32,000 nt of DNA from Zygophlyctis sp. KS116 (taxonomy: Eukaryota > Fungi > Chytridiomycota), in assembly GCA_054661495.1 (NCBI GenBank), contig BAAFSQ010000057.1:1-32000 (forward strand), in the 5' to 3' direction. Below, piece by piece: positions 21,820 through 24,206 of this stretch. Within the stretch, counting starts at the first letter, position 1. Each line of letters opens with the position of its first letter. The notes under the pieces were generated by a model, which saw only the letters and a list, made by a program, of their open reading frames with translations, was not told the origin of the DNA and searched no databases. The position numbers were made by a program, and so were the translations under genes.

Positions 21820-21875
21820 ATAACTCTTAAAGGGAATAATTCTTATAACTCTTAAAGGGAATAATTCTTATAACT
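21820..21875. repeat. Perfect 25-bp tandem duplication in the CFAP73/UBE3D divergent promoter
   Basis: ATAACTCTTAAAGGGAATAATTCTT at 21820-21844 and 21845-21869, followed by ATAACT. Confidence 0.9.
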
Positions 21876-21901: not shown

Positions 21902-22955
21902 ATGCAATTCGTTGAATTTTTGCCAAACTTAAGCTCAAAAACCATTTTCAAACCCAAAAGCATTTGCAAAGTAAAATCTGATCATGAAAATCTATCAAAT
22001 TCTAAAATAGACTTTGACAGTTTTACTAGCATCAACTGCTCATCATGTCAGAATCTACTCTTGTTTAATAATCTGGAAATCAAAAATGCTCCTTCAGAGT
22101 ACTGGTATGATCTTTTAGACTGTTGGGCTTGTCATGATGAAGACTACAATTCTAAACTTAAAGGTCATAAAAATGGAAAGATTTTGGCTAAAAAAGGAAT
22201 CTTATTACTCTCTGACTCTAAATTACTGATTCATAAAACTGATTTTCAAGAAAATTGTCTGATTGTAAGTTATTAAAAATTTGAAAAATTTGAAAAAAAA
22301 TTAGCAAGGATAAATAGAAATGGCTTTTTAGATTCTAGAAAGCCTGATACAATTATCCAAAAATGATAAATCTCAGACACCTTTCATGATGCAAGAAATG
22401 TCATGGATGCTACATATGATTTTACAATTACTTTATTCTTTAGAATCTCGTATAGATTTACTAAAAATTTAGGTGGCTGATACTATTGTTCAGTGTAAGG
22501 AATGTTTAAGTACGATTGGGGAGTGTATAGAGTCTGAAATTTCTCTTTATATGTACTCTATAATCTTTAAAAATGATTATTGTGAATATTATAGGCCTTG
22601 GGTCTATTATTTTTCTAAAAAATTACTAGATTCGGCAGTTGCTTATTCTAGTTATAAGAGTATTGTGATTTCTGATGATAGGAAATTACTGGTTTGGGTC
22701 ATTCATTGGGATGTTTGGATAAATTCTGTTGATGAAGTACAGGATTTAGCAAAAATTCCTCTTTTCCCAGCACTTAAAGTCATGTACAAGGAATCTAGTG
22801 ATTCTGACTTTCAAGTTTCAAATGATAAATCCGTAGAAACGAGATCAGTCACATCTGATCAATACATTGAACTATTAAATCATTTAGAATCTAGTTTTCC
22901 AGGCTCTGATTTGAAAGTATCAACTGGATTCAAAATAGGTTATCTCCGACTTTAA
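21902..22955 (+). CDS. UBE3D: UBE3D/Ipa1 family (HECT_2, E2-binding) protein; exons 21902-22264 and 22473-22955
   Basis: CSSC..L, PSEYWYDLLDCWACH, CKEC..TIG, LLVW...D and ALKVMY. The phase-0 intron 22265-22472 joins the two ORFs in frame. Confidence 0.85.
22308..22429 (+). ncRNA. Intronic box H/ACA guide RNA (snoRNA/scaRNA) predicted to pseudouridylate U2 snRNA; 5' pocket equivalent to yeast snR81
   Basis: Hairpin 1: GGATAA/TTATCC lower stem and 10-bp upper stem 22322-22331/22335-22344. H box AAATGA at 22361-22366. Hairpin 2: AAATC/GATTT and TTCATGAT/GTCATGGA. ACA at 22424-22426. Pockets AGAA..GATAC and CAGA..CTACAT are complementary to conserved U2 GUGUAGUAUCUGUUCU, at 15 and 14 nt from the H and ACA boxes. 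Confidence 0.82.
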
Positions 22956-23164: not shown

Positions 23165-23728
23165 ATGAATTTTACTCTTGAAGGAGAATGCATATCTTCT
23201 ACCGCGATTCCTCTCTTGTCCAATCAAAAGATTCGCAAGATGGAGACAAATAAAGGAATTTCGGACATGAAACTACAGGTTTCAAATTCCAAGAAATCAT
23301 TATCTGCTAAAATACTTCCTGGAGATTGGATATGCAATGGATGTCAATTAAATAACTTTGCTGCAAGATTAAAATGCATCAACTGTGGTTCTTCCCATGC
23401 AGGTGCCATCAGACCGATTGATAGAGCAGGAGATTGGACGTGTCCCAATGACTCTTGTAGATTTCATAATTTTGCTAATAGGAGGGAATGTCATAAATGT
23501 GGTGCTAGAAAGCCAATCAAAAATATTCAAACTCTTAAATCAGGAGATTGGATTTGCTCAAAACCTTCCTGTCTAGCTCATAATTTTGCTAAGAGGACTG
23601 CTTGTTTTCAATGCGGATCTATTCCAACCTCTAATGAATCTACAAAAAATTCAAATCTAAAAACCTTTCTTATGGATTATGGTGAATCTCTATTTTCTTC
23701 ACAAAATCCATTTTCTCCGTATGGATAA
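23165..23728 (+). CDS. Protein with three RanBP2-type zinc fingers (likely RNA-binding)
   Basis: GDWICNGCQLNNFAARLKCINC, GDWTCPNDSCRFHNFANRRECHKC and GDWICSKPSCLAHNFAKRTACFQC. Start uncertain. Confidence 0.9.
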   Translation: MNFTLEGECISSTAIPLLSNQKIRKMETNKGISDMKLQVSNSKKSLSAKILPGDWICNGCQLNNFAARLKCINCGSSHAGAIRPIDRAGDWTCPNDSCRFHNFANRRECHKCGARKPIKNIQTLKSGDWICSKPSCLAHNFAKRTACFQCGSIPTSNESTKNSNLKTFLMDYGESLFSSQNPFSPYG

Positions 23729-24206
23729 TGGATAAATTGATTTTTCTAATCTGTAATAAGTAATGTAAATATATTTTTTAACCTTCTCTCCATTGATGAC
23801 CACAAGAACAACATCTATAAAAGATTGACATTGGTTCATCTGCTGATCTAATCTGAATCATCAAGAAGAATGCCCGATCATGTTCGCATTTGCGCATATT
23901 ATATTTTGAGTTAAAACCATAATCAATGCGGATCTATTCCAACCTCTAATGAATCTACAAAAAATTCAAATCTAAAAACCTTTCTTATGGATTATGGTGA
24001 ATCTCTATTTTCTTCACAAAATCCATTTTCTCCGTATGGATAATGGATAAATTGATTTTTCTAATCTGTAATAAGTAATGTAAATATATTTTTTAACCTT
24101 CTCTCCATTGATGACCACAAGAACAACATCTATAAAAGATTGACATTGGTTCATCTGCTGATCTAATCTGAATCATCAAGAAGAATGCCCGATCATGTTC
24201 GCATTT
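23608..24206. repeat. 284-bp direct duplication (23608-23891 and 23923-24206)
   Basis: The copies look identical by eye at offset 315 and are separated by 31 nt of non-duplicated filler. Confidence 0.95.
23778..23891 (-). pseudogene. Duplicated 3' fragment of RPC11 (C-terminal zinc ribbon, truncated)
   Basis: Encodes KCEHDRAFFLMIQIRSADEPMSIFYRCCSCGHQWREG* without the 5' part of the gene. Confidence 0.8.

Follow-up and report, generated by a model that had tools for sequence, protein, structure and literature searches.

A conserved intronic box H/ACA RNA of a chytrid fungus, predicted to guide pseudouridylation of the branch-site-binding region of U2 snRNA

An unusually long intron of the chytrid Zygophlyctis sp. 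KS116 harbors a box H/ACA RNA whose structure, pockets and boxes are conserved in related genomes and whose pockets are complementary to U2 snRNA. The best explanation of the element as a whole, to which we assign a probability of roughly 0.7, is that of an intron-hosted H/ACA guide with both pockets directed at U2. The predicted mature RNA, 122 nt long, extends from position 22308 to position 22429 on the plus strand of the window, namely the whole stretch of 32,000 nucleotides that was analyzed here (contig BAAFSQ010000057.1 of assembly GCA_054661495.1, positions 1 to 32,000). It is recognized with 116 bits by a covariance model (R1), and a search with the same model finds it as a single copy in the 12.7-Mb assembly.

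The host gene is of the UBE3D/IPA1 type, an assignment supported by Pfam searches in which each exon was run singly. Both exons match HECT_2 (PF09814, the UBE3D/IPA1 family) along consecutive stretches of the profile: 100-194 for exon 1 (21902-22264, plus strand, E 2e-13) and 204-353 for exon 2 (22473-22955, plus strand, E 1e-14). The sequence and its reading frames place a 208-nt GT..AG intron (22265-22472, plus strand) between the two, in agreement with a first-pass annotation of the window that had noted an intron of this length in a UBE3D/IPA1 gene. The element occupies most of this intron, which carries a branch-site-like UACUAAA about 8 nt upstream of the AG, and the window is AT-rich. 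The same annotation had described the host as the gene of a CPSF73/Ysh1 regulator; nothing points to a functional link of the RNA with that role, and the equivalent guide of the fly lies in an unrelated gene, bur.

A search of metagenome and Logan contigs with exon 1 retrieved five orthologous exon ORFs (P0003-P0007), 59-70% identical to it, on contigs that have in common the gene order Anoctamin, DUF4200 (minus strand), HECT_2 and a RanBP-type zinc-finger gene. All five orthologues possess a long intron, of 157-193 nt, at the same position, and the flanks of these introns outside the RNA element are not alignable. A CUAAY motif (UACUAAC-like) lies 6-10 nt before the 3' AG in all six orthologous introns (22455-22472 in the window; L005-L010); it is the partner of the GUAGUA stretch of U2, where modification by the guide is predicted. 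Other features of the locus can be recorded here. One of the relatives (L005, around 1221-1245) has a 25-nt GT..AG intron within HECT_2 exon 2 that the window gene does not have; close relatives thus vary in whether they carry an ultra-short intron. It is the one example obtained here of the length, 23-32 nt, that the first-pass annotation gave for most introns of the window. The neighboring DUF4200 gene is flagellar, and the short divergent region running from it to the HECT_2 start codon contains a 25-nt unit, ATAACTCTTAAAGGGAATAATTCTT, in tandem, with two full copies and a partial third (21821-21875). Downstream of the RanBP zinc-finger gene, two identical minus-strand ORFs of 46 amino acids (23699-23839 and 24014-24154), placed 315 nt apart, indicate a tandem duplication of about 315 bp.

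The sequence between 22308 and 22429 folds into a hairpin, an H box hinge, a second hairpin and an ACA, each hairpin having a large internal loop, and this fold, as previously proposed for the window, is found in all six orthologues. Hairpin 1 is formed by a lower stem (22308-13/22353-58) and an upper stem (22322-31/22335-44) with a conserved closing pair, A22320-U22345, while hairpin 2 is formed by a lower stem at 22368-72/22418-22 and an upper stem at 22381-90/22400-09. The H box, read from the sequence as AAAUGA (consensus ANANNA), occupies 22361-22366 on the plus strand; an ANANNA motif lies 14 nt past the pocket in four of the relatives and is degenerate in L010. The ACA box (22424-22426, plus strand) is situated 14 nt past the upper stem and 3 nt before the predicted 3' end; five of the orthologues have ACA here, and L010 has AAA. 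The canonical distance from target to box in H/ACA RNAs is 14-16 nt. Pocket 1 lies 15 nt from the H box in the window and 14 nt from it in the relatives, and the upper stem of hairpin 2 lies 14 nt from the ACA in all six species, so that the spacings of 15 and 14 nt given in the first-pass annotation fall inside the canonical range; its positions for the pocket motifs (AGAA at 22316-19, GAUAC at 22346-50, CAGA at 22374-77 and CUACAU at 22410-15) are likewise all correct.

L010 (585-708) is the most divergent orthologue: its ACA box is replaced by AAA and its H box reads AGAAUU, which departs from ANANNA, and it retains both pockets together with all stems; its box variants are either tolerated or the mark of a decaying copy. 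Positions 22391-22399 (plus strand), which form the terminal loop of hairpin 2, contain an invariant AGA at 22394-96 (alignment columns A87, G88 and A89), within a loop motif xRAGA that appears as UGAG in L006, CGAG in L007 and L009 and AGAG in L010. This AGA might be a candidate CAB-box-like motif, to judge from its resemblance to the ugAG of scaRNAs.

Folded on its own, this sequence is only modestly better than its shuffled versions (z -2.4) and proves little; the strong support for the RNA comes from the comparison across species. The same RNA, with a length of 122-127 nt, is present in the same intron of the five syntenic metagenomic relatives and can be aligned with 22308-22429. In the model-based alignment of the six orthologues, standard pairs account for 92.5% of the cells, and 10 of the 29 pairs have changed on both sides, a value that 0 of 500 shuffles reached; indeed, none of the five covariation measures was reached by any of the 500 shuffles. 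When the partner was slid by 1-3 columns as a control, pairing fell to 32-46%. Covariation backs all five helices. The upper stems differ among orthologues in nearly all their letters and retain their pairing, and the invariant columns comprise the pocket strands UAGAAA, CUGAUAC, AGACAC and CUAC, bases of the lower stems, the start of the hinge and a UUUA-A tail. Alignment of orthologous introns and analysis of covariation, suggested with the original prediction as a check, thus show the pockets kept, the stems compensated and the boxes present in five of the six species. Mean pairwise identity is 0.74 for the RNA versus 0.67 for the host exon overall and 0.51 at its third positions. Dyskerin, recognized by its DKCLD domain (114 bits), is among the proteins encoded in this genome. 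On this comparative sequence evidence, we consider it settled that the element represents a functional intronic box H/ACA RNA gene.

U2 is present in this genome as two identical gene copies (148 bits to RF00004), whose region for branch-point recognition reads GUGUAGUAUCUGUUCUAUUCAG; the U2 sequence that the first-pass annotation had used is valid for this genome's own U2. The two genes (C11:32201-32391 and C140:2790-2980 of assembly G000) are also identical in their flanks, over 60 nt or more upstream and some 20 nt downstream. On another contig, C912, two halves of a U2 match lie about 1.4 kb apart and constitute an interrupted or broken copy (L001-L004 designate the U2 loci).

The 5' strand of pocket 1, AUAGAA (22314-22319, plus strand; UAGAA invariant in all six species), pairs with UUCUAU of U2, and its 3' strand, GAUACAA (22346-22352, plus strand; UGAUAC invariant), pairs through GAUAC with GUAUC. 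Among the relatives, the upper stem of hairpin 1 is closed by an A-U pair that does not vary, and the window carries a further, bulged U at 22321; the pocket strands xUAGAA and GAUACxx therefore abut the upper stem directly. Against the U2 sequence of this genome, GUAUC[UG]UUCUAU, the pocket pairs flush, forming 5+6 Watson-Crick pairs, of which 5+5 belong to the conserved core. Of the pairing originally proposed for this pocket, the GAUAC/GUAUC arm stands as it was, and the 5' arm turns out to have six base pairs (AUAGAA/UUCUAU) instead of four. The uridine so exposed is U40 of U2 (42 in yeast and 41 in human numbering), at 15-16 nt from the H box, and the score of the match is reached in 0.045% of pocket-strand shuffles (p 4.5e-4). 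Moreover, U2 reads UUCUAU here versus UUCUua in the Rfam consensus, and the guide reads UAGAA versus AAGAA in the fly consensus guide; a base of U2 that is specific to the lineage is thus matched by the guide.

The competing claim of ribosomal RNA on the pockets had to be evaluated with stand-ins. Neither a 5.8S model nor a universal SSU motif matched anything in the 1175-contig assembly G000, and rDNA is consequently taken to be absent from it; a scan of viral contigs with the 5.8S motif returned no rDNA. As stand-ins we used 117 eukaryotic rDNA loci (401 kb) found in metagenome contigs by their 5.8S motif, and pairing was also scored in five complete units of eukaryotic rDNA (58 kb). For pocket 1, the best scores in the five complete units were at most 9, included G-U pairs and fell in unrelated places, and no recurrent site emerged from the 117 loci. 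With an 11-bp canonical pairing (p ~5e-4) and no rRNA competitor in these sets, the earlier assignment of the 5' pocket to yeast position 42 (human 41) is upheld, and we consider it probable from the sequences that this pocket aims at U40 of U2.

In Rfam, the best match of the RNA is a known guide of U2. At gathering thresholds, the window gave nothing, and an E-value search of 1.4 kb produced a weak generic H/ACA match only, to snoF1_F2. Only with the search narrowed to 145 bases did RF02667, the Drosophila scaRNA PsiU2-38.40.42, emerge as the best of 4227 families (29.9 bits, E 6e-4), in an alignment that takes in the whole model (positions 1-136 onto 22305-22429). The same family is at the top for L009 in a search equally restricted to 145 bases (25.6 bits, E 6e-3), and L010, the most divergent orthologue, has no match to it. 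The scores, about 30 bits in the window, fall far short of the gathering threshold of RF02667, which is 88 bits. Since the letters shared with RF02667 are mostly guide elements, common descent and convergence on the same target are indistinguishable. From the sequence, we have therefore filed the RNA as probably working like SCARNA15, with no membership of RF02667 being asserted.

The fly RNA, pugU2-38/40/42, is encoded in an intron of bur, was found by co-precipitation with WDR79 and is concentrated in Cajal bodies (PMC3884663). Both Xenopus extract and yeast served to show that it makes psi42 and that a single 3' domain, by refolding, makes psi38 and psi40, psi38 being formed in a pocket that has three unpaired substrate bases (PMC3884663). 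Non-eutherian SCARNA15/ACA45 and C50C3.14 of C. elegans are triple guides of the same kind (Deryusheva and Gall 2018; PMC5733568). In the orthologues of SCARNA15, the 5' pocket serves psi42 and the 3' pocket serves psi38/40, with psi38 made non-canonically (PMC5733568, PMC3884663), and experiments have established guide function for the RNAs of fly, frog, human and worm (PMC3884663, PMC5733568). The RNA described here resembles the fly RNA and SCARNA15 in being an intron-encoded H/ACA RNA of two hairpins, and it resembles RF02667 in the strands of its 5' pocket (xAGAA ... GAUACAA), which are closed by an A-U pair and aimed at yeast psi42 of U2. It differs in its host gene, which is of the UBE3D/IPA1 type here and bur in the fly, and in belonging to an organism that is not an animal. 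The novelty that had been implied for the combination of pockets therefore falls, because RF02667 and the SCARNA15 family have this layout and the targets predicted here; the first-pass annotation had itself foreseen that an existing Rfam family with the same targets would remove it, and RF02667 is such a family.

Two other guides of the same uridine deserve comparison. The 5' pocket of snR81 in budding yeast reportedly guides psi42 of U2, as Ma et al. are said to have described in 2005, and its 3' pocket guides a pseudouridine of 25S rRNA. The 5' pocket of our RNA is aimed at the same U2 uridine as that of snR81, whereas no conserved rRNA site in the five rDNA units and the 117 loci fits its 3' pocket; no Rfam match to snR81 was obtained at E values up to 10. 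The role of the 5' pocket of S. cerevisiae snR81 in guiding psi42 is also documented by PMC5733568. Vertebrate SCARNA4/ACA26, to which no Rfam match was obtained either, is an H/ACA guide for U2 psi41 in human numbering (yeast 42), as predicted for the present RNA, and its proposed psi39 target is unconfirmed by experiment (PMC5733568). As a separate observation, window 22321-22403 and L010 597-705 show weak, sub-threshold Rfam likenesses to plant snoR104, which has the same GAUACAAU strand past its 5' hairpin, and, in L009 and L010, to TtnuHACA17 of Tetrahymena; other kingdoms might thus have U2-type guides of their own.

The 3' pocket requires a separate and more cautious treatment. Its 5' strand is UCAGACAC (22373-22380, plus strand), with AGACAC invariant, and its 3' strand is CUACAUAU (22410-22417, plus strand), with CUAC invariant and CUACA present in five of the six species. 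The upper stem of hairpin 2 is closed by a covarying pair, C-G in five species and G-U in L010, which defines the strands of the pocket as ...AGACAC and CUAC(A)... The 3' arm is flush with GUGUAG of U2 through CUACAU, contributing 6 bp in the window and 4-6 bp in the relatives. The first base to stay unpaired is then U36 (yeast 38, human 37), which lies 15 nt from the ACA and is preceded by a paired base. Only AGA(C) of the 5' arm can pair with U2, namely with UCU(G), and its 3-4 bp are formed only after a spacer of 3 nt, the invariant CAC at 22378-80. Of the pairing first proposed, CUACAU is indeed flush with GUGUAG, whereas the CAGA arm lies behind this spacer and begins with a base that is not conserved, C22374 being A in L005, L006 and L010 (three of the five relatives).

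The configuration recalls that of RF02667, in which CUACA is also flush to the upper stem and U38 (yeast numbering) also lies about 15 nt from the ACA, the 3' pocket being non-canonical in both RNAs. They differ in the 5' arm, which is (C/A)AGACAC here and AAGAACAG in the fly, with no flush pairing from C41 here, and in the unpaired bases, which are three guide bases here versus three substrate bases in the fly. Other registers were considered and set aside. Pairing on U35 (yeast numbering) brings AGACAC flush with GUAUCU at the cost of one C-A mismatch and is weaker, with only 1-3 bp in the 3' arm. A fly-like register, with ACAG on U42-U45 (yeast numbering), leaves four substrate bases unpaired, and a psi40 configuration is permitted only by the window copy (U22408), the G of the relatives giving an A-G mismatch beside the target.

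The principal alternative to a guide with both pockets on U2 accepts a real H/ACA guide whose 5' pocket acts on U2, and holds that the 3' pocket is either orphan or directed at a lineage-specific rRNA or another non-coding RNA. It draws strength from the invariance of AGACAC and CUAC, because pairing with U2 uses AGA and CUAC(A) only and leaves the conservation of CAC unexplained, and from the statistics of the match: under relaxed rules, 5% of shuffles equal the complementarity of this pocket to U2 (2% do so inside the branch-site region) and 6-18% equal that of its conserved core, a complementarity that is not significant (p 0.05-0.18). Furthermore, with the organism's own rDNA absent from the assembly, the pocket may have a lineage-specific rRNA target. 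Against this alternative, the canonical target of such a pocket, GUAG-UN-GUGUCU with G-U pairs allowed, occurs in the genome at chance level (3 hits versus 1 in the control, then 19 versus 40) and in no case within a known RNA family, and the five complete rDNA units and the 117 rDNA loci of 401 kb contain no recurrent site for pocket 2. The 3' arm is, moreover, flush with U2 directly adjoining the target of pocket 1, and the 3' pocket of the fly and vertebrate family uses the same uridine non-canonically. Taken together, we regard an orphan or otherwise directed 3' pocket as a serious minority view, distinctly less probable than a guide with both pockets on U2. U36 (yeast 38, human 37) is plausible as the real target of the 3' pocket, chiefly because the guides of fly and vertebrates are analogous, and we would place its chances at close to even or slightly under. 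The dual U2 guide of the first-pass annotation is accordingly sustained for the yeast 42 pocket and no more than plausible for the yeast 38 pocket (p 0.05 for the match, 0.06-0.18 for its core).

Far less probable is that the RNA is an ordinary H/ACA snoRNA modifying rRNA, with the U2 complementarity of both pockets arising by coincidence. Most intronic H/ACA RNAs do guide rRNA modification, and our scan covered stand-in rDNA, the organism's own being absent from the assembly; however, coincidence would have to account for the 11-bp canonical match of pocket 1, which extends to a lineage-specific base of U2, and neither pocket matches a conserved rRNA site in that set, while the best Rfam match among the 4227 families is precisely a U2 guide. 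The RNA data come from one estuary metatranscriptome run, in which one contig of 228 nt covers exon 1 with at least 99% identity; the host gene may be transcribed in that sample. The least probable reading, that of a conserved intronic structure acting in cis on splicing or expression of its host in place of a stable RNA, would agree with the lack of any read-level trace of processed RNA in this run and with the large share of the intron that the element takes up, yet it leaves unexpected the maintenance of an 11-nt complement to U2 and of single-stranded pockets, an ANANNA hinge and an ACA at spacings of 14-15 nt, amid helices that drift with compensation.

For a guide with both pockets on U2, we infer the processing of the RNA, its assembly into an RNP, the modification itself and the target of the 3' pocket as follows. 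After splicing, the RNA would be freed from the intron and join dyskerin/Cbf5, Nop10, Nhp2 and Gar1. Its 5' pocket would then direct the formation of pseudouridine at U40 of U2, in the part of the snRNA that binds the branch site, and its 3' pocket would probably act four bases upstream, at U36, in a non-canonical manner like that of SCARNA15 and Drosophila pugU2-38/40/42.

The RNA is new, and its guide design is already known from flies, worms and vertebrates. We consider it rather doubtful that it is a true orthologue of animal SCARNA15 and pugU2-38/40/42; if it were, a multi-site guide for U2's branch-point-recognition region would already have been present in the ancestor that animals and fungi share, and snR81 of budding yeast would be a remnant of it with the 3' pocket re-aimed at rRNA. 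The finding adds a well-supported predicted guide of snRNA modification to a lineage of fungi for which we found none described. The 3' pocket, with its three unpaired guide bases, would represent a natural variant of the non-canonical pocket, and the long-intron outliers of a genome with ultra-short introns would offer a simple route to its non-coding RNA genes. Dense guided pseudouridylation of this region of U2 may be part of how splicing operates in this lineage, with its introns, described as 24-30 nt long, and their tight CUAAY branch site. Whether by descent or by convergence, the design seen in fly, worm and frog, in which the 5' pocket serves psi42 and the 3' pocket serves nearby uridines, would also be present outside animals.
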